DNA of 64,000 nt from Oculina patagonica (GCF_052425735.1 NC_135758.1:35650001-35714000), one strand, 5' to 3'; positions 3,484 to 38,573 are shown, counted from the first letter of the stretch. Notes: generated by a model not told the origin, from the letters alone. Made by a program: numbers and translations.

Positions 3484-3741
3484 AGGGCTGACCTTTTAAA
3501 TTTTGAAGGGGAGTTGGGCAATTACGAAAAGAAATTCTTGAACTGAACACGAAAAGTAGGAGAAAAAAAAAACGTGCACAAGCAAGCACAGAATAAAAAA
3601 TCAAGCATGGTGCAAAAATAAAATCTTGCAGAGGGTTCTGTTGGTAAAATAAATTCTTGCAAATACCAATGCTGAAAAAATTCTTACTCAGAAAATATTG
3701 CCTAATTTCGCCCCCCTCAAAAATACAGATGGTCCGTCCCT
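3484..3741. mobile_element. Short MITE with AGGG...CCCT termini (Harbinger/Zator-like)
   Basis: taagggctgacc..ttttgaagggg at the left and cccctcaaaaat..ggtccgtccctaa at the right. A-rich interior. Confidence 0.5.
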
Positions 3742-7506: not shown

Positions 7507-8131
7507 TTAATAAGAAGGGTGTAATTTACGACTTGAACCCACTCATCATTTTAACAGAGATGATTGTAGAACACTTTTTCATCATTGCTGATTGCATTTG
7601 GTAAGTTTTAGCGAACTGGGACTTAAAACGAATGCAAAACCACATTTCAAAGTATAACACTAGCGCGCGCCACATCATATGTGACTACCCTATGGAGCAA
7701 CCTTCACAACTCACTGTCATAAAATATATTAAGCAAAATGGTTAAAATGAGCCAAGCAAACAAAACTTGGCGTTTGATACACCTAGAGCAGTTTTCTAGT
7801 GACTGTTCTGAAAGCAAACCCAAAGTAATCAAAACTGGACAATCAGAACAAACAGCACAATGAACCAATCAGAACTTAAAGCAAAAAACGTGTAACCGGC
7901 GTCAAGCGCGGGAAAACGTACGTGTTTGGGACAATTAGTCACTACTGGTTTTGATTATGTTTGAAACTGTTCAAAGCAAACGCGAAACCAAATCAACACG
8001 TGACTGATGTCTAAGGCCAATGGAAAACTGCTCTAAATGATCTTAGAACTAAAATGGAATTGGATAGCTAGATTAATTGAAGTTGCCTGACCTTTTAGAT
8101 GTTCATGACGCCCAGCTTGGCCTGGCAATCT

Positions 8132-14941: not shown

Positions 14942-15780
14942 TTTGGAAGACGGGTGTTACCTAACTATCATCGGCTGTACTCCCTATGTATTTTCTCGGA
15001 GGAAATATGATGTAAATCCACTTTTTCATATATTTGCTATCATAATTTGATACAAATTATCACGCACTTTTTATGTCCCAAACCAATTTATTGGTTTTCG
15101 GGCATTTAAAGGCGACACTAAAGCTTTGAGCTTTGCAATGCAAAATTTTACGCTTATGGAAGATGGATATATTTTATAAAATGCTGTAAAATTCGCTTCA
15201 GTGGAGTTGTAAAATCGCATTTATTATCGGGCAATTGGAGGGGCTTCAACCACCTCACTTCTCTTCCTTTTGGCATGCAATCTTACTTCCTTATGTTCTG
15301 TGCTGTTTCCAGAAGAGGAAAAGGAGTAATTAAGTGATATGACAGAGGCAGGTCCACATATGTAAATAAGCAAATCAGAAGGTTGTTGATTATACTTTAT
15401 TATAATCATTTGCATGCAAGAAAAACGTGCTTGTGTGTGAGCAAGTGGGTTAGTTACTACTATGCATATATGGTAACAGTTTAACAAATATTTAATAACT
15501 AACCTGTACATGTAAACGGCCTTGATCTTCACGTCCCTGCACTAGCGAGGTGCTTTGCTGCGGGTCATTTTGGCTCTGCTTGAAGTAAACACAGTTATAA
15601 TACGTAAGACGTAAGTCTAGTTAATATAGCTAATTCATGGGCGTCGCATCATAACTTCCTTAGTAGTGACCATCCTTGTTCGTTGTCGGTTTGTTATTAC
15701 GTCTGTGGTTTGTTCCTACCTTTCAACTTCAAATTATTATTTTTGTTTATAACATAGGTAGCAGAGCCGCGTAATCAGTA

Positions 15781-15955
15781 CAGTCAACTCTCGTTATAGC
15801 GGACACGCTCGGGGCGTCGTTTAGTGTCCGTTATAGCGAGAGTCCGTAATAGCGGGAGTCATTTCCAGTCAAACCTCCTTCAACTGGGATCAGGATTTTG
15901 TCCGTAATAGCGAGTGGCCGCAATAGCAGGGTGTCCGCAAGGCGAGAGTTGACTG
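15781..15955. mobile_element. Tc1/mariner (pogo-type) MITE with TA TSD
   Basis: ta|cagtcaactctcg...cgagagttgactg|ta, with internal gtccgt.atagcg repeats. Confidence 0.8.
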
Positions 15956-17556
15956 TATACGTAAGCGTGCAATAGTGGACGCCCATAGCGTGAGCAAATC
16001 TTTTTGTCACGTACACTTCCACCTGCAATGTTATAAAGCAATTGGTTTATGCTTTAGCGTGCACCAGATATCGAGTCATGGTACACGCGGGAAGCTTTGA
16101 GAACACTTATTAAGCTAGAGTTGCTCTCGGCTAACGCATCGAGCAACCCTTTTTCGAAGAAAAAAAAACGAATGCATTTTTTTCTAAATTAAGTTAACCG
16201 TCAGCGAATAAATAATACGGTGTCAGTGTATTTGAACAGCATCTTGTCTTTAACTGGAAAAAGTCAGCCTACCAGTCAATCAGCACTTTGTCAAAAGTGG
16301 CGGGCTGACTGTTTCATTTTCATACCGTTTTCCCGCACAAGCTCGCTCATTTAAAGTTTTTGTTTTACCTTATTTCTTAATTTACATTACACGAAAATGT
16401 ACCAACAGAATCGTAGGATTTAAATTTCGAAGAACTTGGAAGAAAAACGTTTTCTTGTGTGAATAAATGATAAAGAATTGAAGATAATTAAAAATTAAAG
16501 TAATTTTTATTTACTGCCCTCTGTTTCCTCGACGACCTGAGAAAACGACAAATAGATGACAAACAGAAAGTTAGTTACAGCGGAGCCCTTAACACCGGAT
16601 CTAAATAACATTGTCAATTTAACTAGAAGGGGCAAGATTTTGATAAATTGTGAGTTATTAATCTCGATCTTCACAAAATTAACCAGATTCACCTTCGGAC
16701 GTGCATGCAAATTCATACTCTCACCGAGGTACAAGAGAGGGGGGGGGGGGGCTATTACTGTTAATTCGCAGCGAAATTATTTTGCACTGGGTAAAAGACC
16801 CTTAGCTTACTATACAAGATGACATAATTTTTGTTGGCTGTGACGTCATATGACGTTGCTACAGCCACCATCTTGGATGATTTCGCTTTATTTTAGAAAG
16901 TCAAAAAATAAGGAAATTGATATAAAATCAAGCTATAATGCTAATGGCATGCGAAATTAAACAAATCGCACAGTTTTGTTTTGCAAAATCTGGAAAATAA
17001 AAAATTATGTCGAAAGTGACGATTTTTGGTCAAACCTGCTTGTAATTATGACCTTGTCATGGCAACTTCACAAATTATGGACACATAGTTCACACAGCAA
17101 AATGTTTGCAAGGAATAAATGAACGGCTACTGAAGGTTTCAGTATCATAGAGTAAATCCCCTTTTCAAAATTAAGAAAAAAACCTCCGGGGGCGGCGGTG
17201 GCATCAAAAAAGCCCGAGGTTTATTTCCCATTGAGGTTTAATATCATTGTCCGCAAAAATGGCCCTCTGATATGCTAGACATAAAACCACTATCTAATCA
17301 AATAAGATCTCGGGGACAACGGAGACCGAGCGAGAAAAGGAATTCCTTAATGATAATGAGCTATCTTACCTCTTTACAGCAACAAGTTTTACAGAAGTTT
17401 GGTCGAAAACAGTACAAAAAATAGTACACGATGTTGAAAGGCACGGGAATAGTATTGCCTTCGTCGATCCATTCCAGCCACATCTGGGTTCTTGAGAATT
17501 GCCACTCTACAATAGCGTTTTCCTACGAAAGAAGACTTTGGTTTGTAATCGATCGC

Positions 17557-18056
17557 NNNNNNNNNNNNNNNNNNNNNNNNNNNNNNNNNNNNNNNNNNNN
17601 NNNNNNNNNNNNNNNNNNNNNNNNNNNNNNNNNNNNNNNNNNNNNNNNNNNNNNNNNNNNNNNNNNNNNNNNNNNNNNNNNNNNNNNNNNNNNNNNNNNN
17701 NNNNNNNNNNNNNNNNNNNNNNNNNNNNNNNNNNNNNNNNNNNNNNNNNNNNNNNNNNNNNNNNNNNNNNNNNNNNNNNNNNNNNNNNNNNNNNNNNNNN
17801 NNNNNNNNNNNNNNNNNNNNNNNNNNNNNNNNNNNNNNNNNNNNNNNNNNNNNNNNNNNNNNNNNNNNNNNNNNNNNNNNNNNNNNNNNNNNNNNNNNNN
17901 NNNNNNNNNNNNNNNNNNNNNNNNNNNNNNNNNNNNNNNNNNNNNNNNNNNNNNNNNNNNNNNNNNNNNNNNNNNNNNNNNNNNNNNNNNNNNNNNNNNN
18001 NNNNNNNNNNNNNNNNNNNNNNNNNNNNNNNNNNNNNNNNNNNNNNNNNNNNNNNN
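17557..18056. other. Assembly gap (500 N)
   Basis: Run of N. Confidence 1.
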
Positions 18057-21000
18057 GTTTATTTGGGATTTTTTATTGATTTCTCGTATGTATTTCAGAA
18101 AATATCGATTAAGGGTGATTTATTATTTGAATACAAAAAATCCAAATCAATAAATGTTCCTTGACAAATTATATATTCTAAATCCATTGTTTATCTCTTG
18201 TCCATGCGAAATTTGTAATTTTTTTTGATAACAATTTAGAAAAAAATAAAGAATAAAGTTTTGAAAAGACAAAAACATAATGATAAGCTAAAAAAGCTTA
18301 AAAATATACGAACTGTTGGTCAGTGTTTTTCGACTTTCAAGAATTGCTTGCCTGAATAAAGACTTCTTTCAATATATTAGTGGAAATCCATATGACTTTG
18401 ACAAATTCAAATTGTGTTTGGCAGTAAATTGGTCTTTAGCTTATAGTGACAGGTGATCTTAATTTCTTCTTTTTGGGGGTCTTTTGTTCAGCATTGAGTT
18501 TGACAAATCTACCCGCGTTCAGTGTCTGGAATGATCTCCTGTTTTTCGAATTAACTTTAAATAAGCAAGAATCAACAGCGTTTTATGCAATTTGGCTTTG
18601 TAGAAAATTTTAAGCAGCTAAAACCTTTTTGACCCTTCTTCCCCATTACTTTTTAAATCTAAAAATCAGATTAAAATAACCTATCAATTTGACAGCCCGC
18701 GGGAAAGAGATTTCAAACTAAAATCTTCACCGCCATTTGGGAGAATTGTTCTCGCTTTTTGTCGAGAATGTGACTCTCTATCTAAATATTTTGTTAACTG
18801 AAAGAAAACATTTTCCCAAAGAAATCTTACATGCTTGATGCCACATCAATCGATAATCGATCGCAGCCTTCGATTTTGTTTTGACTCACAAGCAAATCGA
18901 TTTATAACATAATTATAGCCCAAAAAAATAGTTATAAACGTTTTAGTAAATGTCAATAATGAAATGGCAGACTGCAAAGTAACTCAACTTAAGCTGGTCA
19001 ATAAAAACCTGGAAGCTTTGGAAGTTTCCCTCCCAAGTAGTCGATTTTATGTCGTGTATTTCTGGTATAGGTTAGACGCAAAAACTATGAAATCCGTGAT
19101 AAGTTCTGACCCACATCACTTCCTTGCATGGTAATGCATATTATAGGGTCATTAACTCTAACCGCGTTTTTGTCAATCTAATTTTTCTGTTAAAAAGCAC
19201 AGTATGATAGTCTTTTGTGAGGGTCTGGAAGAGATTTTTCCTAGCTTACGAGCAAATCCACTACCGAGTATTAAACGTTAAACTTTTATTTAGTGTCAAT
19301 ACTGAAATGGTTGACTGCGAAATAAATCAACCACTTGGGCCGCGGTAAATGCCCAGAAACTTTGAAGCTAGTTTTCCACCCTAGTTGTCGATTTTAGGTG
19401 ATGTATTGTCACTGAGCTAAAGTTTGTCAATATTGAAACTCGCTACTATTCTCTGCGGAATCAACAAAGTATTGTTTATACTGATCGGGGTTTGGCGAGT
19501 GAGCAAATTTACCGTAAACCTTTTTTTATAATGCGCTTTAAAACGCATTCACTAGTTATAAAGACGTTTTCACTTGTAATGTGAATGAAATACTATTAAC
19601 CGCGCAAAACAAAACTTGAAGTACTCTCACAGGTGTTTCGATATGTTTTAATCAAAACTAATAAAATTGACCAAAAAATTATTTGTTTTGACAAAACAAC
19701 AGTTCTCTCCCTGAAATGTGGCCACTGGATTTAAGGACCTGAATTTAAGGCATTTTTGCATTTATGTTATCTCACTCTTATCAAGAATCCTGTCTTTACA
19801 TGCTTGCCAGCTAAAACGTCTTGTGAGGGTGATTACTGTACTGAAAGGCTTTAAAATACAGGATCGTTATTAATTTGATTGTTCCAGCCCTATAACTTCC
19901 GCCGTTAGGAGGACACGTTGTCTACGGCACTTCACGTTTATTTTAGGGAAAATCACGAACATTTTTACAGGAACAAAAAGACTCAGAGATGAGGAGTCTA
20001 AAAGACGCCCAATAGAATTTCTCTTCTCAATGTCCATGGCGATTAACGGAAGTTTAAATTTTAATTTGATTGATTCTTTTACATATACCATCACAACCGC
20101 TACCCATAACAGTAATCGGAAATGTTTGTTAATATTTTTCAAAGAGACTTTCGTGTAACTTGTAAATTAAAACGCTTGGGCGTATTTAAGACTTGCTAAA
20201 TTAATAATAAAAGATGTTCACCAATAATGTTGAAAATGTGTTACTGCAAGACTTGAGAGGAAGCGCCATAATATAGTCTCAAACATGCGATTTTGATTAT
20301 ATTTCTAAAATAAATTATGTAAAATAATAATGAAGAAACCGATGTGTTTTTAATCACAGTAGCTGTTATGGTATTATTCAGTGCATTTACCATTCTATCA
20401 AAATGCATTTCTATTTAGGTGTAATCCTGATAATATGTAAAAAAAACCAACTGTCCAGACGTTTCATTTAGTTGTAATGCATGCGGCGAAGATGTTTGAA
20501 CCTTTGCTTTAATAAACCTTTTTTCACACGTTCGTGGTATATATACACAACTAAGCTTATTGGCAATATATATCACCAGCTCGAAATGAATATGAAGGAA
20601 CCGATTTAAACGACACGTAAACATACCGTCGTTATTTGCTTAATGAAATGAGTTTTTAGATCCTTACCAACGATGTATATACAAAAGTGATATCAGTTTG
20701 TTGAATCTTGAGCAAAAGAAATCAAATAAACCACTGTTTTTCTTGACCAGGGAACGCGGTTCATTTTTTGATCAAGGTATATTACAGAGGGCGCCTTTTA
20801 AAGCTCTTCAGTTACACCAGTGCACTGCTTTAAGAAATCGCACTGCACGCTGTAAAATAACACCTGCTATCGGCTGACTTTTATAGAAATGCTCCATGAA
20901 AGGAACATAGCCTCAGTAATATAACTTGCTCGATCTAAACATTAACGGTTTGCCGGAGCAGAAAAGAGGCAAAAAAGCCATGGCTCATTAACTGTAAACA

Positions 21001-21170: not shown

Positions 21171-22043
21171 TCACATTTCGATGGTGGGGACGCGTCCGTT
21201 TTCTCTTGCAATAAGCTTCTTTATTTCCCTCTGAATGTCCCTCTTTAAAAACGCGTAAACCAAAGGATTAACTGCGGAGTTAAGAACCAAAAGCAATGAA
21301 ACGATCTGACCAGCCTTATCAGACAGTTTGCAGGAGAGCGTAATGCAGAGAACTAAACAGTTTACTACAATGTAGCAACCCAAGAAGAACAAGACTAAAG
21401 TAATTATGAAAAAAGCAGTGTTGTGCTTCCTATGTCTGCGCACGCTTGAGGCTTCGGTGGAAAATTGGTTAGATTGAACTTGTAGTTCCATCGCCGCTTC
21501 TTGGCGCGACTGTGCGCGCGCAACAACTAGGATACGAACAACGGCATAGAAGAGCAACACGCAGGATATTATGTCAAAAGCAGAGACGCCAATTAATCGT
21601 AAAAATTTCAGAGCGGTGTTGGAATTTGTGGCGTACATTCCTACCAAAAGTGACAGCGCGATTGCGAAGGCAATCAGCCATGCTGCCGAGATAACCACCC
21701 CAGGCCGTCTCTTAGTCACGCAGGTATTGTATTTAAATGGATGAACGATGGCGATGTAACGATCCAAAGTCAAAACGCAAAGATTTGTTACCGACGAGTG
21801 GAGGAAGAACCAGAAGAATGCCATGTACACCCTGAAGTTGCACGCCATTGATTTATTACAAAAATATCCTGGTGGAAAAACAGCGATTCCGACCCCAAAG
21901 TCGGCTACTGCCAAGGAAAGGACGAACCAGTTGGCCGAGGAATGCAGTCGGCAATTTTTGGCGACCAGAAAGACTACAAAGCTGTTTCCTGCTAATGTTG
22001 CGATTGAAAGTAGCCAGCCTATAGAGTTGAGTAGCTTTTCCAT
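21171..22043 (-). CDS. Intronless class A GPCR, orphan, short-N-terminus family (paralog 1)
   Basis: GN in TM1, FVLSLAVAD, DRY, NSAVNPLVY. The start is taken at the ATG of MEKLL because it aligns with the starts of the paralogs at 58816 and 62145. Confidence 0.92.
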   Translation of the reverse strand: MEKLLNSIGWLLSIATLAGNSFVVFLVAKNCRLHSSANWFVLSLAVADFGVGIAVFPPGYFCNKSMACNFRVYMAFFWFFLHSSVTNLCVLTLDRYIAIVHPFKYNTCVTKRRPGVVISAAWLIAFAIALSLLVGMYATNSNTALKFLRLIGVSAFDIISCVLLFYAVVRILVVARAQSRQEAAMELQVQSNQFSTEASSVRRHRKHNTAFFIITLVLFFLGCYIVVNCLVLCITLSCKLSDKAGQIVSLLLVLNSAVNPLVYAFLKRDIQREIKKLIARENGRVPTIEM

Positions 22044-24363
22044 TTCAGTTGGACGTTTATCACTCAGCTTAGATAAGCGGCGACGTGTTGAACTGTGAGA
22101 GGGAACAAAGATCAAGAATATCCAATGCGCTTTTTCAAAGTATGATTACCAACTCTGAATATGCTTTCTACAGTTTATATTGCCGCTGTTTAATAACGTT
22201 AGCGTAAACGTGCTTTGCTGAAATGACGTTTATGCGCAAGTTTCAGTTTCCATCCTTGTCAGGACATATGACAATCAATCGCCGGATAAACGTAATAAAT
22301 AATTAAACACATTGAATTGGAAAAACATAGTTATTGTCTGTTTCGCTTATAATGAATTAATTAAAGGTGAGAGTTTTAACTTCTACGTTCTGTTTATTGT
22401 AATTTTATTTATGCAATGGCGTCTCACAGAGAAAACAACCTTTTTCGCTAACGTTTTAAAGTATGATGGGAAATATTTTTTAAAAGGAATGAAAATGTCC
22501 AAACGCTTCAAGATAAACTGTATATTTATGCTCATCGGTTTATCAGTTTGTTGATAAAGCTGTTTATATAAAGCACGTTTCTTATTAGATTCTAACAAAT
22601 ATACCTATAGTTGTATTTACATTCTGGATAGAAAAGAGAGACAGTTAAGGTCAAACATTTTTGGTAATGCGCATGACACTAAGTCATGAACTCGAAGAGA
22701 GTTAGCTTAAAACTAATTTTCTATTTTACAAGTCGACTAGAATTGTTTATTTTTCCTTCTGCTAAATTATGAATGATATAATTATAATGAACATTTTGCG
22801 GACATGGCCGCAGGAGCATTGCCAAACTATAAGCTTCGTCATACACGTAGTTGGATCCAATTTTGCGTCCCGCTCCCCTGGTCGCGCTATTTGTCAATAC
22901 CCTAAGATATCAGTAATGTTTTGAACATTCATGCAGGGAAGGAAAATATGTGGAAAAGAGTTGTTATGTTTATGTTAGAGTTTAATCATGCTTAAGGTCA
23001 AAAATGGCCTATACAATTCCAGACCCTCTTACACTTGCCCTTGAGCTGGCTTATAATAAATGGGGAAGTTAGAGCATATCTCCGGCATGTAAATATTTCA
23101 TGTTGTTCTTCTCAGTCACGAATTGTCGGTGTTTCACGTTTCATCTCAGGTACGTGTTGTAAATATTTGTTTGGGAAACGCATAAACTTTGGAAGGTTCC
23201 CGCCAAGTGGATGAATAGACTCAGTATTATTAATATTGACATCTACAGCTATATTTATTAACTTTGCCACTACATTTTATTCACTTTGAATACATGCTGT
23301 TACTTTAATTTGTCATGTTGCACTAAATTGAATGTTGAATAAAATTAAATGAGAACCGGTTTAATTTGCTACCAACTAAAGAAAAATAAGTGTTTATTAA
23401 AAAATCAGTGCCGTCGTGGGCGAGGAGGTCGTGGCAGGTGGCCCAGCATCAATGATCAAAAGGCCTATTCGATTTAATAAAATTCTAAATAACTTGGTTT
23501 TGAAACCGTGATGGGGAATTAATAACATCGAGCTGCGTGGGATTTGACGAAACAGATTGTCTTACCCCGTTCTTACCTCTTTCCCCGTGGCCAAGTTTGA
23601 ATTTTAGTACAAATAAACATGCCTATTTTCGTGACGTTTCAAAAATTCATCGGGGAACGTGTTATGCCATTTTTCGCTCACGTGACTTGACGGTTCTATG
23701 CTAAGGTAACCATGTTTCGTCAGGCTGCAGTAGCAAATTTTAGAATTCTTTCCCTTGATAGGAGCGGTTCTAGTTATTTGGTTGTTTTTGTTAAGTTTCT
23801 TTTAACGTTGTTTTTTTCTTTTTTTTTTTCGAGTTCCTACAGTCAATCTAAAAGACAAAGTGAGACCGATTTAAATAAAAAATAGTTAAAACCTTATATC
23901 AAAATATACCTTATATAATCTTATTAACAACGAAAATATGCTAATGAGAGACTAACGAGTTATTTATCTTCAATCAGGCAGCTTTTGCGAAGGTCTTAAT
24001 CTATGGTAGAAATATATCAAATCGTGTGGAGGTTTATCGATTTTCGTGCAAACCGAGCGAAAAAAAAAGTAACAACACTTTATAGAAATGCTTCATGAAA
24101 GAGGTACATAGCCTTAGTAATTTAACTTGCTCGATATAAAAATTTAAGGTTTGCCGGAGCAGAAAAAAGGCAAAAAAGCCATATGGCTCATTAACTGTAT
24201 ACAAAATGTAGCTTTGGTAATATATAGTTATATGTAAAAAGGAAACTGTATAACTGTTTCGGTACGAAAGACCTTATAAGTCACAACATGATGGCTGGGC
24301 AACTTAATCAGTTTTCTCTTTAAAATTATCTTCCTTATTTCATAAAAGAGGTTATTAACAGTA

Positions 24364-25245: not shown

Positions 25246-26363
25246 TTTAGGTGGACTTCTAACACTCAGCTTAGATAAGCGGCAATCTCTTGGACTGCGA
25301 GGAGAAGAAAAATCAAGAATATCAAATGTGCTTTATCAAAGTATTATCAGGAGCTCTGCGAATGCTTTCTTCAGTTTGTATTGCCGCTGTTTAATACGTT
25401 TCCGTCAGCGAAAACGTGCTTTGCTGAGTTTCAGTTTCCAGTTCAGTTTTCATCTTTGTCAGGACAGATGACTCACAATCAATCACCCGATAAACGTAAT
25501 ATAATTAACCATTGAATTGGAAAAATAAAGTTATTTTCTGTTTCGCCTATAGTGAATTAAAGATGAGAGTTTGAACTTTTTAATACGTTCTGTTTATTGG
25601 AATTTTAATTTAGGCAATGGCGTCTCACAGAGAAAACGAACTTATCGCTAACGTTATAAAGTCTGGAGTATGATGGGAAATATTTTCTGAAACGAATGGA
25701 AATGTCCAAACGCTACAAGATAAACTGTTTATTTATGCCCATTGTTTATCATTTGTTGAAAAAGTTGTTTATATAATGCAAGTTTTTTATTAAATTGTCA
25801 CGAATATACTTTTAGTTGAATTTTAAAGTCTGGGAAAAATGAGAGGCAAGATCAAACCTTTTTTGGTAGTTAAATTGAGACAGTAAGTCATGAGCTCGAA
25901 ACCAGTAAGCTGAAAACTAATTTTCTGTTTTACAATTCCACTAGAATAAGCTTTTTTTGAGGGACTGGTCGACTAAATATTATAGCGGCTTAAACACCTT
26001 ATTCTCTTTTATCCGATATTTTTTTATTACAAAAAAAAAAAAAAAAAAACATTTTGCGGACACTACTGCCGCAGGAAGATTGTCAGACTAAACTTCCTCG
26101 TCACCCCGCACGCACTTTGAATTACGTTGCGCTGTTTGTCAACTGATATGTCTGCTTAATTAAGATATCAGTCATGCAATTCCTGGTTACCAAGATAAAA
26201 TAAATGAAAGAGAGAAGTCTGGCCATATAAGGGTCTGGCCATATAAAATGGCCATATATTTTCAGACCCTTTTATAATATTACGCCGGCTCTTGGGCTGG
26301 CTGATAATGAACGGGAGCATATCTCCGGCACTTATTGTAAATGTTTCATTGTGTTCTTCTCAG

Positions 26364-27315
26364 CACAGGCGGCCCAAGCTCACAATAAGAGGAGTTTATA
26401 CAGTAATTCATATGTTAATTGTATGCAAAAACGTGACTCTCGCCTTGCACCATATGGAGGTGTTGTGTTACGGCGGGTTGCACTTATGTTTATGTAAAAG
26501 CCAAGCTCTCGATGATGAGATTTTACTCTAATTTAAAATTACCCAGAAATATGTTGCAATTTTTAAATAAAAATCAATTTTTCCTATCGCGCCGTCTTAT
26601 TTGATGTAAACAGACAATTAGCCGATTTATTTGTGCGGTAAGCCTGACATGTTCGTGCGCGATAAGGCTAAGGGCTCCGCACGCGAGCGGTGTTTTGTTA
26701 CATGATGACCGTTGTCCGTTGGGTCGAATGTAAATTTCAAAAATATAAGGATTTGTATTGAACGAAACGAAGGTGGTTAGCAAGCCAAATATGTTTGAAA
26801 ATTTTCAATAAAAATGACTTACCTTGCCTCTACGACGCTGTTGGTGAAGTTTGCGTCCTCTCTGAGCAGATCGTTGGCGATTTAATGCCATTTTAGCCGA
26901 TTTTTTTTTTCGCGCTGTCCCCTCTCTACCAAAAGAAGGAGAAGGCTGTACACTAGTTCCTAAGGAGGCATGCCTTCTGGAGCGAAAAATCCTACTTCCA
27001 AATTCTCCAGAGACCAAAAAACCTCGACAATCTTGCAGCCCGAAGGTTGCTCTTTGCATGGAATGCCACTGCTAAACAATCCGTACATTTTCCATCACAC
27101 AACTCTACATTTTTCTTCTCGAAATCTAGACACACGTTCGCTCGAAGCCTGGCTTAGTAGCCAAGTCTCCACGCAAAAGTAACTCCTCCAGGGACGCCGA
27201 GGGTCCGATGTCGAGCAACAAACTACCTACCGGCCACTGTACCCTCGGAGAAATTCGACTCCGGGTCATTGTCTTAAATAGCCAATCGCAACGACGCCGG
27301 GTCGTGTTTACGTCT
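26364..27315 (+). repeat. Left long TIR (alpha variant)
   Basis: Reverse complement of 35673-36753 apart from indels. Its outer ~520 bp matches 37405-37923. Confidence 0.92.
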
Positions 27316-27863
27316 AAAAAAGATATAAATAAATTCTCGTCTGCACGTGCCCTTGCCCTCATGTTTCTTCAAGTTCCTAACATATGGTTTGACCTTCAAC
27401 GCCTACAATTATAGTTCTGGCCTGATATTTGTTTCGGCAAAATCTGCAATGACTTTGAATAAGCAATAAACAGTTCTTCGCTGTATTAACAATGGCAGAT
27501 TTCTTTTATCATTATCTTTTTGTTCATCGTGATTTTCTTCTTATCAACAAGTTTTTGTGACGTCCGAACGGTTGCCGTATATATACCATTGCGTGTAAAG
27601 GTTACAAAAACAAAACAAAAAAATTTGGGACGGATAGCTGCATTTATGTATCTGTAATCTTCTCTTTACTTAAAGTACGATATCGCACAACGGATTTCCT
27701 TTACTAGTGGATTACATTTTTCGCGAAATGTGAGTTACTGACACATGTTTACTTTAAAGTTAGCTGATTGTTTTTTTTGCATTCTTGTGGACTTCAGATG
27801 TTATCTTATCGCATTAAGAGTCGAAGTAAACTTACCTCTGTTTTTACATTTCTGTAATCATAG

Positions 27864-30861
27864 GATCCAGTTAAATCCTGACCAAGCTGAGATTGTTGAA
27901 TTTGCAAAACAGGGGCATAATCTTTTGATTACTGGCCAGGCAGGTGTCGGGAAAAGCGAAGTAGTGAAAAGAATAATCCACAATGCAAAAGAGCAGGGTC
28001 TGAAAATAGCAGTGGTTTGTTCAAGTGGCATTGCATGCCAAGTCTATGAGAGTTCTGTTGCTTCGACTGTCCACTCGTACTACGGGCTCCAAACAGCAGA
28101 TCTTCCGTGGATTCAGGTCATAGACAGAGCAGCTGAAAACTCCTTGGTCAGGGAAAGAGTGATGTCTGTGGACGTAATCATTTGGGACGAGGCTAGTATG
28201 TCGAGTCAAAGAATGTTTGAACTCGTCAATTGTTTGCACCATCAACTTGCAGACGAATTGAATTGCCAACTCCCCTTCGCAGGAAAACAACTCATTCTTG
28301 TGGGGGAGTTTTTGCAACTGCAACCCGTCCCAAACACGTTTGACGAGGGCAGTTTTATGTTTCTGTCGCCCGTTTTTGCCGCTTCGATTTCTCACCGCTT
28401 CGAGCTCACCGAGGTTATGCGCCAATCCGATGCCGAACTTTTGTTCGCTATATCTGACCTTAGAATGGGTAAATGTTCGGCAAGAACCGAAAATTTTTTG
28501 TTGGCGCTTTGCAGGGAACTGCCACCGGTTATAGCGAATAACGCCACGCATATCTTTTTTAGAAAAATCCCCGCGATGCTGTTCAACCAACGACGGATCG
28601 ATGAACTTCCAGGGGAGCTGGCTGTCTTTGATGCCATCGTTGAAAATGAGATGTCCGGGAGCATGAACTGGCCAGGCCAGCGTCGCTTACAGTTGAAGCA
28701 CAACTGTAAAGTGTTTGAAGTGTTTGATCAGCTTTCACAGAACGAGTCTTACCTTGCCACACCCTCTCCGGATTGTTATGACGCATGTAGAGCTTATCTA
28801 AAATCGTTGAAAAGGGGCGATTCGACACTAGCTTTTTTGCGCCAGAAAAACAACGCTATCGATTATTTGTTGAGGGCCGACCGTGAAAGTCAGTTGCACG
28901 CCTTTATCAACATCCTTTGGTACCACGCGTTTCTCATCATTAACGATCATATCGTGGAAAACGCCCACGAAATCGTTGCAAACGTTGGGCGCCAACACTT
29001 CACCGAAGCTGCCTCTCAAATGCACGTACTTTTTCAGAGTGCGGACTTTGCCAGTTATGTCTGTGCCATTTTTGATACCAGTACGCATGCAGCCACAGAA
29101 AGAGCAGTTGCAGTACAGCTTTCGACCTCGATTTATTGGAAATTCGTGCGTCATCTGGTTTCCCTTGTTAGACGGCGACGTGAAAATGACGAAATTCCAT
29201 TCAGTGTGGAGGAGATGAGCAGTGTTGGAAAAGCGAAGGTTCGCCATGTGGGAGGATGGGCAGTGAGAAAGATCCTCACTCGTTACCGAAAGTATGTACA
29301 GAGAAATATGTTCTCTACCAACAGTGCAACTCAGTCCAATGTGGAAAAACAACAGAAGCTCTGCGAGTTGTTAGAAGAAAACATCATCATCCCTTACGCC
29401 AAGTTAGAGGAGGTTACCAAGTACCCCGAGACCCTCGAAGTCACTGAAGCCCGACAGTACAGAGGACGTGGCTTGCTCCACATATCAGACGAGGCGTATT
29501 TGTTTTTCATCCATCTAGAAGGAAGAAGAGTTGAGCTGTTGAACCAACAAAGATTACAGGAAGAGATGGAGAAGATGGTGGAGACAGCAATGAGAGAGTT
29601 GGCAAGAGACGGAACTATTAAAGTTAATTGGCGAAGATGCTTTGTTACAAGGGATGCCGAGGGAAACACGGTAGGTGCCTTGTCGAGATAAGTTTGTGTT
29701 TCAGGCTAACCTAGCACGAAACATGGAGTATTACATAAAGTATAAAACGCCGCTGACAAATTCACCGGGCGCTGGTACGTCTGTAGTTTCGCTTTGAGTC
29801 GAACTTTCTCGTGATTTTTACTTGCTGCTTTTAGTTTTCGTGTTCTTTGTCCATTTTATGTTAAGGGATATCGCATCCCTTCCCTTTAAACATGAAATTT
29901 CAGGAGAACTTGTACCACTATATAAGGACAGGAATTCACATGAGCGCACAGCCTATTTAAATTTAGATCGACCTTGCTAAGTTTTGACTACATAATTAAC
30001 ATGGCGTGTCGCTAATTCACGTTTCATCTTTTTTTTATGTTTCAAGGATCTGCTGGAGACGATGCTGGGGAACCTCTTATTCTATTATTTAAACATGGGA
30101 ACCTCCCAGTTCTTGAGAGACTTTAGACGCGCACACCAAGTCAAGAAAAGCGTCGAACTGCGGAAAAGAGTGCTGCAACGTCAAGAACGCACTAAGGAAA
30201 GGACTGATAAATTGCCCTTCGAGGTAAGTGTTAACAATGACATACGATGCAAATGGAATCTGTTTTGATCGTATGCAACTTAACGTTTGCATGCAATTAC
30301 GTAATATTCAGAGGAGGAGCCCAGGAGGGGGGGGGGGGAGTTGGGGTGTTTACACTAATCATAATGAATGCACCATCATTATTGCAAGTTCAAAAAGAAA
30401 ATTTTAATTACTGAAATACACATAAATACATACATATAAGTGCAAACATGTCGACCTGTTATTTTGACTGGCTACTCCATCTATATAGTACTTTTTGCTG
30501 TGTTATTTGTTCTGTTTAGGAAATTGTTAAAGACAGAAGCAACAGAAAGCATGTATCACATGGTAGACTGGCTGGTTTTATTGAAAAACATAAGGATGCT
30601 GGATTGGGCCGAGCATACCTCAAGTCTAAGCTGATCTTACTGTGTGAAGCATACAACGTTCAAGTTTCTTCAAGATCTACTAAACTGGAGATTGCGAGAA
30701 AGTTGGCCGAAGCAGTCAGGTTGAACACCTACATACCATTCATTTCACCAGTCGATGACTGACAGTACAGAGTAGCTGAAAGTGTGGACTCACATGGACA
30801 CATTAGGATTTGTCTCCGAATGATGAGACCATCTGAACCCAATGAGCCGTCACATGAATAA
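27864..30861 (+). pseudogene. PIF1-family helicase (N-terminal half) fused to a P-transposase-CTD-like domain and a SAP-like motif; exons ~27864-29670, 30047-30223, 30520-30861; 5' exon(s) not resolved
   Basis: Motifs GQAGVGKS (I), SSGIAC (Ia), STVHSYYG (Ib), IWDEASM (II), LVGEFLQLQPV (III), LTEVMRQSD (IV), LQLKHNCKV. Motifs V and VI are absent. GT-AG introns are in phase. TGA at 30760-30762 precedes a further 32 open codons. Confidence 0.8.
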
Positions 30862-31030
30862 TTTTGCAAATCGTAAAAAGAGGTAACAGTACAGTACTAC
30901 CCTTTATGTCTTTGCACAGTTATAATGCCTGGTTTAGCGTGCAGCCACCTCCAGCATTTCAGTTATCCATTTGTAAACTTTTGGATCTTAGATTTTGTAG
31001 CAAACAATATCAGCTTACTTGAGACTGGAG

Positions 31031-34000
31031 CTACTTACTTTTTCCTGCATTGCTTTTTGGGCTTATTGTGGTTTGGCCCAGTCTGATTGAATTCTGTGTG
31101 GACTGCTGTTGCAGGAATGTTGGATTATCATTCTGACCATTGCAGGAACGAATTTGGCAGAAATGATTTTCAACACAGTCCTGATTGACGATAGAAGGCT
31201 TTATCACAGGATTTGGAAATTTAGTTAGTTTGATTGTAATAAGAGACTGAAAACCAAGACACATCGACTGAAGATCAAACCACAGTTTGCTTGATATAAA
31301 TTCATTTCTTTTTTCTTTAGTTTGGGCATCCCACTCTACTATCAACTTGTAAAACGCATCCAGCTTCTTAAGCCTGCCATCGCTTGTGGTGTTGATGTAT
31401 AACTTGTCATTAAATAAGCTTGTTATCTCGCTTGTGTGCTGCAATAGTGTTATTGCTGAATTAAGAGTACTTCCATCCTTTCCAGTGGCATTGAGATGTT
31501 CCTGGTACTTCTGCAATCAAAACAGTTCATCTCATGTGGTTATCAGAACTTATCGCAATCTATGATGAAAGAAATGTGTTAGAACACAATAGTGTTCACA
31601 CTGCGAAAGCACAGAACTGAAAGCAACTGATTGGTTTTTAATAATGTTTAACTTCCTCATTTCTAATCCAAAAAGGTGTCAATATGCCATTTTTTATCGC
31701 CTCATGACAATAAGTGTTTGTCAAAGAGACACTCGATGTCAAGGTAACCTCAAGTGGTTGTCTTGAACTGCATGTTGACATTTAACACTGACTTTGGCTA
31801 ACAGCTCAATCGATGGATCAGTCAATCAATTAACTACAAACCTGCATAAGAAACAGCATTTTGCAGTCCAGTACATCCTCAGCAAGATGATTTCTCATTT
31901 TAGCAGCTGAATCCAACTCAAAATGTTGTGGGGTTAAGCGCTCATGCAGGGGCAGTGAAAAGCACTCTTGATCCCAGTTGAAAGCTTGTCGGAATTGCTG
32001 CCAAGTTACTGCTTTCCGTCCCAGTTTAAGACATCTAGGCTTGCCTTGGACATTGCTCTTTTGGACATTGTTGCGGATTTTCTTTATGTTGTGCTGTACA
32101 TGTAAGTTAAATATTAGCAACCTTCAGTTGATTGTTAGCTCAATAAATAATTTTAATGTTTGCTTTATTCCAAACATTGCACTTGCAACTAACCTTTGGA
32201 TCCATGATGAACACCATGGGGCCTCCTGTGTAGATATTGTGTGTAACAAATTTGTCCTCAACTGGATCTTTGTCTTTGAAATGAATTTTGACAAATTGCC
32301 TGTTACAGTCAGCACCATCCATGACACACCAGTACACCCTATATACATAATAATTGAATTAAAGTTTATTAATGTATTAATGTTTAAATTACATTACTTT
32401 GTTTAGATGCTGTTGCATCTGGTTGAGTTGGACATTTTCAAAGCAGATGAGTTGCTGATTAAACCACTTTAGACATGTCTAACATATAAGTAATTTCACA
32501 TTCTTATAAAGTGTAGATACTTTTCACTGTTTATTATAAAACCCACTAGATGTGGTAAATAGACTTCAATTTTGAATTTACAGTACGATTCATTAGTTTA
32601 GTTTAATTGAAGAAACATTTAATTACAGTACATGTAGGTTATCAGATGAAGAGTGCTTGCATTAGTAAATGTAACATTTGCCTGATGACTCACACAAATC
32701 CAATTTCTAGCATCTTCAGAACTCCCTCCCAGAAGAGGAAGTACAGATCACTTGGAGTACAATCTCCTGATGGGAATTGAGCAATGGGAAATCGAAACCC
32801 ACAGTCACTCACAAATATGAACTGTAAGACATGTGTTGCCAATTCAGGTTCCTCAGTTTTACCTAAGAAGAAAATAGTATTGATATTTATAACGGTTGTA
32901 ATGTAGAGCGTTAATTAGCTGTTAAATAAATGCAATGCCATGTTGTATTGCATTTTTTTGGTTTAAGAACAAGGTAAGAGTTTGTATAAACTTGTTTAAC
33001 TTAGATAATCAGATTATATAACTTATACCACTTATACAGTTAGGATTTACATTGTTAAATCCTTTTCCAGAGGAATGTGCATTATAGTCCCTTTAAAGCT
33101 CCTGTGTAAATTTTTCCTTAACAGAGTTAACTAATTGGAAGTAATACGTACCTGAAAGACTTCTCATTAAATCGTGCCCCTCACCAAGGTCTACGAAACC
33201 AATGAGCCTGTGTTTTCCATTTTTAATGGCCATCTCCAGGTTTTCCTGTTGCTTTTCAAGTAAACAAAAATAATATACAGTGATCAGGTTACTCATTGTG
33301 CCAACAGTTAGGCTAGAGATGTTGTGTTTCAGGGCTGTCATTAAGGGATGATTTCATTTCATTTTACTTGATGTTATGGGTGATGGTTACTGTAACGAAA
33401 GAAATTGGTAACAATTTCTGCAGTTAAAGCAATAAAAGCTAATAAAGGCGATGAGTGTTTCAAATTTGAGGAAAGTCCTGTGTATTAAGTCAAGGAAGAC
33501 AATGCTCCAACTCTGTGTCAGTACAAGATTATTTATTGTGATGTTATTAGTCTGGAGTACCTGGATTTTCATCTCGTCTATTGCAAATCCGCCCCAGAAA
33601 TCTGCTTCCTTTAGCCCTTGTTTCTTAGCGTCATTCAAACACCACAGGAGTGTTTTGTCATTCCATCCCGATGTCTCCTCCACTCTGTTTTTATTCTGTC
33701 TGTTTGCAAAATTTAAGATAGAAAGCAGGGGAACAATGTGATATGGTTTTTGTATCTGTCATTTGATGGAATAAGTTCGTGATTGGTTGGGTTTATTAGA
33801 TTTCCTCAAACTCACTTGAGTGTGTTTATCTGCACATGGACGGGGAAAATTGCCATTAATACTACTATTAATATTATTATTATTGTTGTTGTTCTTGTCG
33901 TGGTTGGTTTTTGTTTTTTTGTTGTTATCTTTAAATAAAAGACAATTGCCATGTGGAGTCTTGTTCATATGCATACATGAGTCGTTTTCAATTCCCCGGG

Positions 34001-35605
34001 AGCCATTTATACAGGCAAACAATGTCACGGTCCTGAGTAAATGGCATGTTATGTACAGTACGATTTAAACAATGGTGTAATTTACATTGTGGTATGCTAG
34101 GTAATCCCTACCTGATTGTTTTGTTGCTGGGAAGAATGAGGACTTCCCTAAGTGGATCTAACACACGGGGGTTCTTGCAGTACAGCTCGATACACAACCT
34201 CATAATCCTGGCAAAAGTAAAAATGTTACCTTTAGTATTGATATACATGCAACGGATTGGATTAAGTATGTAAGGCAAAGATTCGGAGCATCCTGACCTG
34301 CAGAGTACTTCATAGTAAATAAGGGTCTAAGAGTTAAACAAGAAACTTACTTCGGATGCCAGCGATAGCCATTCTTTTTTGTGCGAGCCAACTTGTTTTG
34401 CTGCTCCCAGAGACACTTCATATCCTCGGGTATGTTGTCTTTTGGTAGACTATTCCATATGGCAGACAAGTCTTCGTGATCTTCAGCTTCCATTTCAATA
34501 GCCTCTGACATAAATTTCTCACGCCAATAATTCTCTCGGTTTTCTGCATTTCTCTTTGCGTTGCGTTCCTGTGCCAGTTGTACAATAACTTCTTCCTTTG
34601 TAAGGTATCGCTTGTTGGTTGCTGGGTGAATGCTGCCCCTTTCAAGTTTTCTCTTCTTCCTCCTGTTGTCAATTAACGTGACGAAGGTGACTACAAGTCA
34701 CGCAACAGTTCCCAGAGGAAGTCAGAACTTGACATGAGGATGAAAATGCTCTGATTTCTGAGGTTTTTGACTCGGTTGTCCGTAGATCTTGGAAAGACCC
34801 GCTTTCGTGTGGGAGTAAAGCTACCACAGCCTCGTCCTCTGCAAGACTTATTCCTTGGCATATGGTAGAGTGTTCTAAGAATGCTAAAATTGTGTGTACC
34901 TGGTCCTTCAGAGGACGATTATGCAGGTCAACGATCTTGATGTCCTTCCCGATGTCGATCTCACACCCATGAGATGAAATCGTGTAAGAACGCTCACTGG
35001 AATCGGATATGTTAATTGAAAGTTCCGTGGTCACTCGTTGCTTTTTAAAAGTCCACTTTTCGTGACGAACGAAGCTGATCTTGTTAGGGCGATCCGTAAT
35101 TTGTATCCAACTATCGGGTAGTTTTATTTCCTGATCGCAGCACAGTTCGAGGGAACCTTCAAATGAATTCTCAGGATTGATGGCCTTTCGTTTAAGATTT
35201 AGGTAAAAGGATCGTCGTTGCCCTCGTGGACCTCTTTTCACAAGTTTAACTTTGTCACCCCACATTTCTTTAACAAGAAGCCCCAAATGCTTGTTATTCA
35301 AGGGGTTAACGTTCTCTTTCACTGTTATTGAATCCTCGATCAAATCCGGTACGGCCAGCAGAGCATTCTCAGCGATTTCGTACCTAAACAGTAACCTAAT
35401 AATCAACGAAGAAAAGTGATTTATATTATTTAGGTGCACATTACACACGGATCGGGTACAGCTTGTTAACTTCAGCGATGAACATCACCATAGTAAATTT
35501 AACTTACCACGTTTTCCAGCTCAACGTGTTTGGGATCGTTTTTATTTGAACCTCACTGTCTCGGCCGCCGAAAGTTCTTTTCTGTGGTGTAGACAACATG
35601 TTCAT
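31031..35605 (-). pseudogene. P-element-superfamily DDE transposase with an N-terminal RFX-like winged-helix domain; 9 exons (35605-35508, 35383-34351, 34207-34112, 33699-33561, 33245-33152, 32862-32694, 32338-32194, 32093-31842, 31510-31031); one frameshift near 34670
   Basis: WEQQ..GYRWHP, LYCKNP..LILPS (HTH region), FAIDEMKIQ (D1), VMDGADCN (D2), DPKHNIKKIRNN (DxxH), KMRNHLAEDVL, NQDCVENHF (E). All introns are GT-AG and phase-compatible. About 830 aa if the frameshift is corrected. Confidence 0.9.
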
Positions 35606-35672
35606 AGCAAACGGAACTCACAAGAAGGTAGCGTGATCCAGACGACCGTTCACAATTTTTATATTTTAAAAG

Positions 35673-36753
35673 AGACGTAAACACGACCCGGCGTCGTTGC
35701 GATTGGCTATTTAAGACAATGACCCGGAGTCGAATTTCTCCGAGGGTACAGTGGCCGGTAGGTAGTTTGTTGCTCGACATCGGACCCTCGGCGTCCCTGG
35801 AGGAGTTACTTTTGCGTGGAGACTTGGCTACTAAGCCAGGCTTCGAGCGAACGTGTGTCTTCAAACGGTTAGTCACGGCGGTTGGGAAATTCAGACGGCT
35901 AGATTTCGAGAAGAAAAATGTAGAGTTGTGTGATGGAAAATGTACGGATTGTTTAGCAGTGGCATTCCATGCAAAGAGCAACCTTCGGGCTGCAAGATTG
36001 TCGAGGTTTTTTGGTCTCTGGAGAATTTGGAAGTAGGATTTTTCGCTCCAGAAGGCATGCCTCCTTAGGAACTAGTGTACAGCCTTCTCCTTCTTTTGGT
36101 AGAGAGGGGACAGCGCGAAAAAAAAAAATCGGCTAAAATGGCATTAAATCGCCAACGAACTGCCCAGGGAGGACGCAAACTTCACCAACAGTGTCGTAGA
36201 GGCAAGGTAAGTCATTTCTTTTTGAAAATTTTTTCAATATATTTGGCTTGCTAACCACCTTCATTTCGTTCCATACAAATCCTTATATTTTTGAAATTTA
36301 AATTCGACTCAACGGTCATCATGTAACAAAACACCGCTCGCGTGCGGAATCCTTATATTTAGAAATTTACACTGCACACAACTGTCTTACTGTCATCATG
36401 TAACAAAACACCGCTCGCGTGCGGAGCTCTCAACCTTATCGCGCACAGACATGTCAGGCATACCGCACAAATAAATCGGCTAATTGGCTTCAAAAATCGC
36501 CAAAACACCACGAATCGAGAAAAAACACATCAAATAAGACGGCGCGATAGGAAAAATTGATTTTTATTTAAAAACTGCAACATATATCTGGCTAATTTTA
36601 CATTAGGGTAAAATCACATCATCGAGATCATAAGTGCAACCCGCCGTAACACAACACCTCCATATGGTGCAAGGCGAGAGTCACGTTTTTGCATACAATT
36701 AACATATGAATTACTGTATAAACTCCTCTTATTGTGAGCTTGGGCCGCCTGTG
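35673..36753 (-). repeat. Right long TIR (beta variant, with an extra 40 bp and an internal ~77-bp duplication)
   Basis: Inverted match to 26364-27315. Its outer ~625 bp is nearly identical to 36781-37405. Confidence 0.92.
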
Positions 36754-36780
36754 GAAGCACCGACAATCTGTCACTGAGAA

Positions 36781-37923
36781 CACAGGCGGCCCAAGCTCAC
36801 AATAAGAGGAGTTTATACAGTAATTCATATGTTAATTGTATGCAAAAACGTGACTCTCGCCTTGCACCATATGGAGGTGTTGTGTTACGGCGGGTTGCAC
36901 TTATGATCTCGATGATGTGATTTTACCCTAATGTAAAATTAGCCAGATATATGTTGCAGTTTTTAAATAAAAATCAATTTTTCCTATCGCGCCGTCTTAT
37001 TTGATGTGTTTTTTCTCGATTCGTGGTGTTTTGGCGATTTTTGAAGCCAATTAGCCGATTTATTTGTGCGGTATGCCTGACATGTCTGTGCGCGATAAGG
37101 TTGAGAGCTCCGCACGCGAGCGGTGTTTTGTTACATGATGACAGTAAGACAGTTGTGTGCAGTGTAAATTTCTAAATATAAGGATTCCGCACGCGAGCGG
37201 TGTTTTGTTACATGATGACCGTTGAGTTGAATTTAAATTTCAAAAATATAAGGATTTGTATGGAACGAAATGAAGGTGGTTAGCAAGCCAAATATATTGA
37301 AAAAATGTTCAAAAAGAAATGACTTACCTTGCCTCTACGACACTGTTGGTGAAGTTTGCGTCCTCCCTGGGCAGTTCGTTGGCGATTTAATGCCATTTTA
37401 GCCGATCGCCAACGATCTGCTCAGGGAGGACGCAAACTTCACCAACAGCGTCGTAGAGGCAAGGTAAGTCATTTTTATTGAAAAATTTTCAAACATATTT
37501 GGCTTGCTAACCACCTTCGTTTCGTTCAATACAAATCCTTATATTTTTGAAATTTACATTCGACCCAACGGACAACGGTCATCATGTAACAAAACACCGC
37601 TCGCGTGCGGAGCCCTTAGCCTTATCGCGCACGAACATGTCAGGCTTACCGCACAAATAAATCGGCTAATTGTCTGTTTACATCAAATAAGACGGCGCGA
37701 TAGGAAAAATTGATTTTTATTTAAAAATTGCAACATATTTCTGGGTAATTTTAAATTAGAGTAAAATCTCATCATCGAGAGCTTGGCTTTTACATAAACA
37801 TAAGTGCAACCCGCCGTAACACAACACCTCCATATGGTGCAAGGCGAGAGTCACGTTTTTGCATACAATTAACATATGAATTACTGTATAAACTCCTCTT
37901 ATTGTGAGCTTGGGCCGCCTGTG
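36781..37923 (+). mobile_element. 1143-bp internally deleted derivative of the P element (beta end plus alpha end), in the opposite orientation
   Basis: CACAGGC...GCCTGTG termini. The beta arm (36781-37406) joins the alpha arm (37405-37923) at a 2-bp AT microhomology. Confidence 0.9.
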
Positions 37924-38073
37924 GTGCTTCACGTTTAATTTCATCTCGCGAAATTGCTGTAAATATTTGTTTGGGAAACGTCCAAACTTCGGAAGATTCC
38001 CGCCCAAGTGGGTGAATCGACTCAATATCATTAATATTGACAACTACTTTTTTAAAGTTTTGCTATTACATTG

Positions 38074-38573
38074 NNNNNNNNNNNNNNNNNNNNNNNNNNN
38101 NNNNNNNNNNNNNNNNNNNNNNNNNNNNNNNNNNNNNNNNNNNNNNNNNNNNNNNNNNNNNNNNNNNNNNNNNNNNNNNNNNNNNNNNNNNNNNNNNNNN
38201 NNNNNNNNNNNNNNNNNNNNNNNNNNNNNNNNNNNNNNNNNNNNNNNNNNNNNNNNNNNNNNNNNNNNNNNNNNNNNNNNNNNNNNNNNNNNNNNNNNNN
38301 NNNNNNNNNNNNNNNNNNNNNNNNNNNNNNNNNNNNNNNNNNNNNNNNNNNNNNNNNNNNNNNNNNNNNNNNNNNNNNNNNNNNNNNNNNNNNNNNNNNN
38401 NNNNNNNNNNNNNNNNNNNNNNNNNNNNNNNNNNNNNNNNNNNNNNNNNNNNNNNNNNNNNNNNNNNNNNNNNNNNNNNNNNNNNNNNNNNNNNNNNNNN
38501 NNNNNNNNNNNNNNNNNNNNNNNNNNNNNNNNNNNNNNNNNNNNNNNNNNNNNNNNNNNNNNNNNNNNNNNNN
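38074..38573. other. Assembly gap (500 N)
   Basis: Run of N. Confidence 1.

Follow-up and report, generated by a model that had tools for sequence, protein, structure and literature searches.

Results

A two-gene element of the P superfamily

In a 64,000-nucleotide stretch of Oculina patagonica DNA (GCF_052425735.1 NC_135758.1:35650001-35714000; hereafter the window, with positions counted from its first letter) we find an element of 10,390 bp, element A (26364-36753), which is best explained as an autonomous-type DNA transposon of the P superfamily that has two conserved genes and is defective in the present copy. The minus strand carries a gene for a DDE transposase of the P/THAP9 kind and, convergent to it, the plus strand carries a gene for a PIF1 helicase fused to a helical domain of about 320 aa (the C-domain). 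We consider this explanation, together with the mechanism proposed in the Discussion, to be probable. The element has long inverted ends and 7-bp target duplications, its layout recurs in two phyla, its second gene is under selection, and both genes are spliced and transcribed, and are damaged in this copy. The preliminary description of the locus had presented a P-superfamily element bounded by inverted repeats and holding two convergent spliced genes; repeats, target duplications, matches to the Pfam families PF05970 and PF21789 and introns seen in RNA contigs all agree with it.

Inverted-repeat search and self-BLAST delimit element A and reveal terminal inverted repeats (TIRs) of about 1 kb, whose arms pair far above chance level, with blocks of 125, 229 and 188 nt at 100% identity and 82-94% identity in between. 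Both termini read CACAGGCGGCC. Target-site duplications (TSDs) of the P superfamily measure 7-8 bp; those of element A, of its neighbour element B and of the homologous elements L004, L005, L006 and L009 are 7 bp long, and the TIRs range from 299 to 1080 bp. The right TIR is transcribed, as an RNA contig continues into it from the first transposase exon, and PIF1-gene transcripts seem to begin within the left TIR. Apparently, both convergent genes are transcribed inward from within the TIRs.

The layout is conserved in cnidarians and hemichordates

Nine homologous loci were reached via PIF1 homologues (L001, L002 and L004-L010) and two via the transposase (L012, and L011, of which the piece at hand is too short to bear on the layout). 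At all nine PIF1-reached loci with enough downstream flank, transposase exons lie convergent to the PIF1 gene and in the same exon order. Complete elements, in addition to that of the window, are L004, L005, L006 and L009, with perfect TIRs of 299-799 bp, CACAGG termini and 7-bp TSDs; the two genes do occur together inside TIRs of the CACAGG type, a check that the preliminary description had proposed. From cnidarians to hemichordates the PIF1 gene keeps its position and its direction, with protein identities of 25-66%, and the two-gene layout spans two phyla, with corals and a sea anemone in one and acorn worms in the other. One locus speaks against this reading. In L012 we see an entire transposase and a single CACAGG end, and a PIF1 gene is absent within 6 kb; because the second TIR of this locus is missing as well, it looks from its sequence like a truncated or interrupted copy.

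Two other origins of the helicase gene were considered and rejected. A Helitron origin is contradicted by the TIRs and TSDs, the DDE transposase and the absence of a Rep (HUH) domain, and a nested insertion of the PIF1 gene by the absence of separate TIRs or a TSD around it.

The transposase gene

The transposase gene consists of eight exons. All seven introns are present as CT..AC (that is, GT..AG) joints in RNA contigs, the exon phases fit, and the stop codon lies at 31031-31033. The last exon matches PF21789 past the curated cut-off in the window (E 1.8e-7) as well as in L004 (8.9e-8) and L001 (9.9e-8), and its neighbours in the ESM Atlas are all TNP-like GBD/RNase H C clusters, with PF21788 at scores of 0.92-0.97. 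Candidate catalytic residues D, D and E are located in exons 3, 6 and 8. Atlas neighbours of exon 1 that carry PF12017 (Tnp_P_element) or PF21787 (RNase H N) reach scores of 0.78-0.85 only, and in Pfam the short exons taken singly, the last one excepted, match nothing, PF21788 and PF12017 included. Given that the stop codon follows the RNase H C motif by about 22 aa in every copy, and that PF21789 is the one family matched by the 120 top-ranking database relatives of the last exon, the transposase family has no C-terminal domain (CTD; PF12596 or PF22824) of its own, a point on which the preliminary description was right.

The head of the transposase is predicted to be an RFX-type winged helix that stands in place of the THAP finger. 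When an AlphaFold2 (AF2) model of residues 1-253 of the window transposase (local confidence score, pLDDT, 85.6) is searched against the PDB with Foldseek, RFX5 ranks first (8zjr_M; E 3e-4, template-modelling score (TM) by target 0.85, root-mean-square deviation (rmsd) 2.0 over 82 columns) and the DNA-binding domain (DBD) of RFX1 second (1dp7_P; E 1.7e-2). Both matches span the whole DBD, at TM by target of 0.76-0.85 and rmsd of 2.0-2.4. By sequence, the best PDB match of the family profile is likewise RFX5, at an E of only 0.12, over the recognition helix and wing. Pfam yields no match at E<=1 for the head, its RFX DNA-binding model falling short of significance, and no THAP (PF05485) match in the proteins translated from the N-terminal exons of the window, L004 and L005. 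The RFX-like head put forward earlier is thus upheld by the predicted fold.

The PIF1 gene

The open reading frame (ORF) at 27745-29691 on the plus strand matches PIF1 in Pfam (PF05970, E 5e-25, residues 42-230) and continues into the C-domain. The NCBI protein P0026 (LOC144666877, 356 aa, Oculina patagonica) is 100% identical to part of it. This model and an RNA contig concur on a GT..AG intron at 30222-30517 and on a stop at 30760-30762, and not at 30861, where the preliminary description had ended the gene. Its end of the transposase gene, 31031, is confirmed; the distance of about 170 bp between the two gene ends is not, the stops being about 270 bp apart. The short C-terminal tail is conserved in an Orbicella model (P0023), and a Pfam scan finds no match for it, SAP included, so that its earlier label, SAP-like, finds no support.

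Homologues of about 800 aa align along the whole ORF and hold about 200 extra residues between window residues 328 and 329, which are the rest of the PIF1 core (motifs V and VI) and a linker. RNA contigs of the same species diverge from the window at 28713, continuing with codons of the missing PIF1 part, and a second contig enters at 28717. The window gene therefore carries an in-frame deletion of about 200 aa, with a junction ambiguity of a few bases. PIF1 homologues of the family are complete superfamily 1B (SF1B) helicases, with PF05970, the Pif1 2B domain and motifs I-VI, whereas the window copy retains motifs I-IV only.

The ratio of nonsynonymous to synonymous substitution rates (dN/dS), a check suggested in the preliminary description, points to purifying selection. 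Among unsaturated pairs the PIF1 part has a value of about 0.10 and the C-domain has higher values, 0.16-0.42, which a divergent stretch at the C-terminus of L007 has probably raised. The remaining pairs are saturated at synonymous sites, yet the protein is conserved. Low dN/dS and protein conservation together argue that the PIF1 gene is an integral part of the element and under purifying selection. NCBI lists one protein of the PIF1-plus-C-domain family (P0129 / P0273) as hypothetical and assigns it to a Gammaproteobacteria metagenome-assembled genome (RUA06953.1, on a 10.6-kb contig); mis-binned animal DNA is a more likely source than a bacterial gene.

Damage and convergent transcription

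The window copy is defective in both genes, through the PIF1 deletion and a frameshift in the transposase, defects that an earlier reading overlooked. RNA contigs from this species hold each of the two genes in an intact form, and the exon 1 region is intact as a single open exon in L004 and L005. Upon translation, the window copy has no in-frame ATG upstream of the winged-helix domain. At best, this copy could be mobilised in trans by intact ones.

A spliced contig of the plus-strand gene extends to 31064 and a spliced contig of the minus-strand gene reaches down to 30384; since the contigs carry no direction, it is probable, rather than certain, that the 3' parts of the convergent transcripts overlap by several hundred bases. 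The apparent overlap, 30384-31064, takes in the last PIF1 coding exon and the transposase stop region. If the convergent transcripts form double-stranded RNA, ADAR-like editing is to be expected. In RNA run X2 we observe dense clusters of A>G changes at 33637-33693 and 34133-34165, at least eight in each and 18 in total, with almost no other change, and one A>G-rich contig of this run is unspliced across an intron. The clusters look like ADAR hyper-editing of plus-sense RNA that is antisense to the transposase; the alternative is a diverged DNA copy.

Element B and the inverted spacer

Next to element A lies element B, which equals element A inverted with 26882-36127 deleted. Its first 626 nt (36781-37406) are a 100% reverse complement of 36128-36753, and the 522 nt at 37405-37926 are a 99.4% reverse complement of 26361-26881. 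Self-BLAST detects no further copy within the window besides these two. The flanks read, in order, TTCTCAG, element A, GAAGCAC-13 nt-CTGAGAA, element B, GTGCTTC, and the 7-bp duplications of A and B look swapped. Re-inverting the 27-bp spacer restores perfect 7-bp duplications for both elements, and it is because the spacer is inverted that the partner of the left duplication TTCTCAG is present as its reverse complement. The simplest history would be two insertions 13 bp apart, followed by recombination between the facing inverted ends, which are identical over 626 nt; such recombination would explain the swapped duplications. Internal deletion and local insertion are classic behaviour of P elements. 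A gap of 500 N (38074-38573) follows 150 bp beyond the right end of element B, and the repeat-rich surroundings may have hampered assembly.

The C-domain of the helicase

A profile built from an alignment of 32 C-domain sequences (A2) gave 1,040 matches at E <= 1e-3 among 1.84 billion representatives. The long matches consist of PIF1 and C-domain, and a few hold the C-domain with no Pfam partner; the domain occurs without PIF1 in P0201, P0215 and P0221, and elsewhere in proteins named for PHD, C2H2 or SAP domains. Its AF2 model is all-helical (pLDDT 82, overall predicted TM (pTM) 0.52).

Is this domain the CTD that the transposase lacks? The preliminary description had called it CTD-like, and at the level of fold the likeness is found, weakly. 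In a shape search of the ESM Atlas the first three rows are THAP9-type clusters (TM 0.30-0.41, rmsd 3.0-4.3), of which rows 2 and 3 carry THAP9_C, aligned to model residues 148/162-320 at rmsd 3.0-3.6. Among clusters of the AlphaFold database (AFDB), PIF1-named proteins, which we take from their accession prefixes to be octocoral and mussel entries, top the list, and rank 18 is a 'Transposable element P transposase' that probably comes from a sponge (Amphimedon) and whose residues 415-682 fall onto model residues 12-312 (E 1.8e-3). VIA, a search independent of Foldseek, places the CTD of the Drosophila P transposase (6p5a_B 617-734) at rank 5 of 48,161, on model residues 6-154 with Z 6.1. Thus, matches from three libraries are collinear with the P/THAP9 C-terminal region. 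Several results weigh on the other side. TM values of 0.28-0.41 and a Z of 6.1 are within the noise range for helical bundles. A Pfam scan of the 32 family C-domains gave noise only, with no PF12596 or PF22824, as did the A2 profile against PDB sequences (E >= 0.24); Foldseek against the PDB and the Swiss-Prot part of AFDB was empty at E <= 0.1, and language-model features returned only HECT-type noise at 0.6. We therefore put the chance that the C-domain is homologous to the P/THAP9 C-terminal region, as judged from models, at about even.

According to a recent preprint (10.64898/2026.08.31.747927), the fold of the THAP9 CTD occurs in no other protein, and P and THAP9 transposases without their CTD still excise and integrate. 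The latter result also counts against the C-domain as the lost half of an enzyme: a complementing subunit would not be required, 'missing essential part' would be too strong a term, and a docking or regulatory role would fit better.

Table 1. Positions of the features in the window, and homologous loci
Feature	Position or source	Strand	Remarks
Left TSD, element A	26357-26363		7 bp, TTCTCAG; partner as reverse complement at 36774-36780
Left TIR, element A	26364-27315	+	About 950 bp; terminus CACAGGCGGCC; RNA contigs run inward from 27286
Main coding exon, PIF1-plus-C-domain gene	27745-29670	+	ORF open; internal deletion inside
PIF1 N-terminal half, motifs I-IV	27868-28713	+	PF05970; stops at deletion junction
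Deletion junction	28713-28717	+	About 200 codons gone: remaining PIF1 core with motifs V-VI, and linker
All-helical C-domain	28729-29670	+	About 320 aa; kept in all PIF1 homologues of the element family
Second coding exon, PIF1-plus-C-domain gene	30047-30221	+	Joined to 30518 by RNA contig; NCBI model P0026
Last coding exon, PIF1-plus-C-domain gene	30518-30762	+	Stop 30760-30762; 3' untranslated region (UTR) to at least 31064
Transposase exon 8 (last)	31031-31510	-	End of putative GTP-binding insertion, RNase H C-terminal motif with candidate catalytic E; joint 31510/31842
Transposase exon 7	31842-32093	-	CT..AC joints in RNA; tblastn matches in 8 loci
Transposase exon 6	32194-32337	-	Candidate second catalytic D; RNA joints
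Transposase exon 5	32693-32859	-	RNA joints
Transposase exon 4	33149-33244	-	RNA joints
Transposase exon 3	33560-33699	-	Candidate first catalytic D; RNA joints
Transposase exon 2	34112-34206	-	Putative P-type helix-turn-helix region; Atlas neighbours carry PF12017; RNA joints
Transposase exon 1	34350-35430	-	RFX-like winged helix, beta-rich Cys-containing domain, coiled coil; broken by frameshift
4-nt insertion AATT	34671-34674	-	Relative to transcribed form (X1 contig without these 4 nt); frame shift leads to premature stop
RFX-type winged-helix DNA-binding domain, transposase N-terminus	35176-35424	-	Predicted fold; AF2 and Foldseek
Right TIR, element A	35673-36753	-	About 1080 bp; 77-bp duplication 36278-36425; holds transposase 5' UTR
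Spacer between elements A and B	36754-36780		27 bp, inverted; its reverse complement puts TTCTCAG beside A and GTGCTTC beside B
Element B	36781-37923	-	1.14-kb ends-only copy, 27 bp right of element A
TSD, element B	37924-37930		7 bp, GTGCTTC; partner as reverse complement at 36754-36760
L001	Coral assembly		Locus interrupted by contig end
L002	Metagenome-type contig		Of the transposase, last exon alone remains
L004	Coral assembly		TIR 655 nt, 100%; TSD CACTGAC; both genes inside
L005	Coral assembly		TIR 799 nt, 100%; TSD ATACAAG; both genes inside
L006	Coral assembly		TIR about 663 nt, 100%; TSD GTACAAC; both genes inside
L007	Orbicella faveolata		Both genes
L008	Exaiptasia		Both genes
L009	Glandiceps talaboti (hemichordate)		TIR 299 nt, 100%; CACAGGG ends; TSD CACACAG
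L010	Ptychodera flava (hemichordate)		Both genes

Surroundings of the homologous loci

The element of L006 appears to lie within a gene for a superfamily-2 helicase, flanked by Helicase_C at one end and by DEAD/ResIII at the other, each encoded on the minus strand (7858-9144 and 21915-22433). In L012 the truncated copy is followed by a similar pair of DEAD and Helicase_C domains and by a DUF6589 gene (15080-18616). In L002, an ORF with a match to Phospholip_A2_4 (PF08398) at 13244-13594 lies downstream of the degraded element copy, and an unannotated ORF of 1,532 aa lies upstream (1-4599).

Discussion

The organisation of this element suggests how its two proteins may act. Gene 1 would encode a DDE transposase of P/THAP9 type that works by cut and paste, with a P-type helix-turn-helix, an RNase H fold with its insertion domain and an RFX-type head, and without a CTD; gene 2 would encode a complete PIF1 helicase (SF1B, 5'-3') fused to the helical C-domain and a short tail. 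The RFX-like head would bind the long TIRs and the DDE core would cut and paste the element, and the C-domain would bring the PIF1 protein to the transposase or to the element ends. We favour a role of the helicase in driving repair synthesis over long tracts, by which the donor gap of 10-13 kb would be refilled from the sister chromatid, because Drosophila PIF1 promotes long-tract synthesis at a 14-kb P-excision gap when POL32 is absent (10.1101/554550). Refilling of the gap would restore the element at the donor site, with one copy gained. Failed gap repair would leave internal deletions such as the two seen here, and both of them do look like products of aborted gap repair. A less favoured role of the helicase would be the opening of the kb-long foldback ends. 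A heteromeric transpososome, or 'split enzyme', is a plausible hypothesis.

How far the two proteins form one machine depends on the origin of the C-domain. In its strongest form, the proposal holds that the C-terminal region of the transposase moved onto the PIF1 helicase, which docks in trans, and that excision is thereby coupled to PIF1-driven repair, making an element of 10-13 kb effectively replicative. As the two genes are convergent, a single inversion of 3' exons could have moved the CTD to the helicase. We regard this version as unlikely, if attractive. It is quite possible, although we would not call it likely, that the element is a two-gene P-type transposon whose C-domain is unrelated to the CTD, being a separate helical module shared by several transposable-element proteins, for example for binding DNA or chromatin, with PIF1 as an independent accessory or repair factor. 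Sequence, language-model and Foldseek searches (Pfam; PDB and Swiss-Prot) that came back without a link, the occurrence of the domain apart from PIF1 (P0201, P0215, P0221 and the PHD-, C2H2- and SAP-named proteins) and the dispensability of the P and THAP9 CTDs for transposition (10.64898/2026.08.31.747927) all fit such a module. An unrelated module accounts less readily for three independent fold searches that place P/THAP9 C-terminal regions at or near the top, for matches that are collinear (the fly CTD on model residues 6-154, THAP9_C on 162-320 and the sponge P tail on 12-312), and for the fact that the very transposase family in question is the one without a CTD.

Could the PIF1 gene be a mere passenger, a Helitron fragment or host gene captured once and without a role in transposition? 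PIF1-like helicases of eukaryotic transposons are mainly known from Helitrons, and the helicase of the window copy is broken. However, no homologue has a Rep/HUH domain, and neither Helitron ends nor separate TIRs or a TSD surround the gene; it is not confined to this copy, occupying the same site and orientation in cnidarians and hemichordates at the protein identity given above, and dN/dS is around 0.1, with saturated synonymous sites, and intact copies are transcribed. We find a passenger extremely improbable, in line with the preliminary description, which a PIF1 gene confined to this copy or with Helitron-type ends would have refuted. That the head-to-head arrangement of elements A and B is an assembly artefact is also very improbable. 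Long identical inverted repeats are hard to assemble and a run of N (38074-38573) begins 150 bp from element B, but other species, assembled independently, show the same anatomy as element A, a misjoin would not yield 7-bp duplications so neatly reciprocal on either side of the inverted spacer, and RNA contigs cover the interior of the element.

Cut-and-paste transposons lose a copy when they leave the donor site and are thought to recover it through repair by the host. If our proposal is true, an element with its own PIF1 helicase would be a transposon that supplies part of the repair machinery, the C-terminal fold of THAP9 and P would gain a second context, and an RFX-type DNA-binding head would have been recruited by a transposase. 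Intact, transcribed copies occurring naturally in corals and acorn worms would be open to experiment. As regards annotation, many gene models named 'ATP-dependent DNA helicase PIF1' in corals, anemones and hemichordates, and probably in mussels and octocorals, belong to transposons and not to the host. Full-text searches of PMC and bioRxiv, which do not extend to Repbase/Dfam, returned no description of PIF1 with P/THAP9-type or other cut-and-paste transposons, and the two-gene variant of the P superfamily is a real and conserved one, probably not described before.

With the known members of the P superfamily (Drosophila P, Galileo/1360, zebrafish Pdre and THAP9) the coral element shares the DDE RNase H core with its TNP-like RNase H C-terminal signature, probably the P-type helix-turn-helix region, the 7-bp target duplication, internal-deletion derivatives and local insertions, and it has long TIRs as in Galileo. 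Unlike them, it carries a predicted RFX-type winged helix for the THAP finger, a transposase without CTD, a convergent second conserved gene for PIF1 with the helical C-domain, and a length of 10-13 kb. The predicted winged-helix fold and the sequence pattern of recognition helix and wing resemble those of the RFX1 (1dp7) and RFX5 (8zjr) DBDs; here, unlike in RFX transcription factors, the domain heads a transposase. A transposon-encoded SF1B helicase of the PIF1 family is shared with Helitrons and Helentrons, but in contrast to the Rep-Hel fusion of Helitrons, the coral element has TIRs, TSDs and a DDE transposase, no HUH Rep, and a helicase that is a separate protein. A DDE transposase and a conserved second gene inside the TIRs are also found in PIF/Harbinger with its Myb-like protein, in ProtoRAG, whose RAG1L and RAG2L genes are convergent (PMC7204232), as in the coral element, and in KolobokP, where the partner of the transposase is a His-Me endonuclease (PMC9587614). 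Unlike in these two-gene cut-and-paste transposons, the partner in the coral element is an ATP-driven helicase, perhaps joined to the transposase through a domain which in relatives belongs to the transposase itself.

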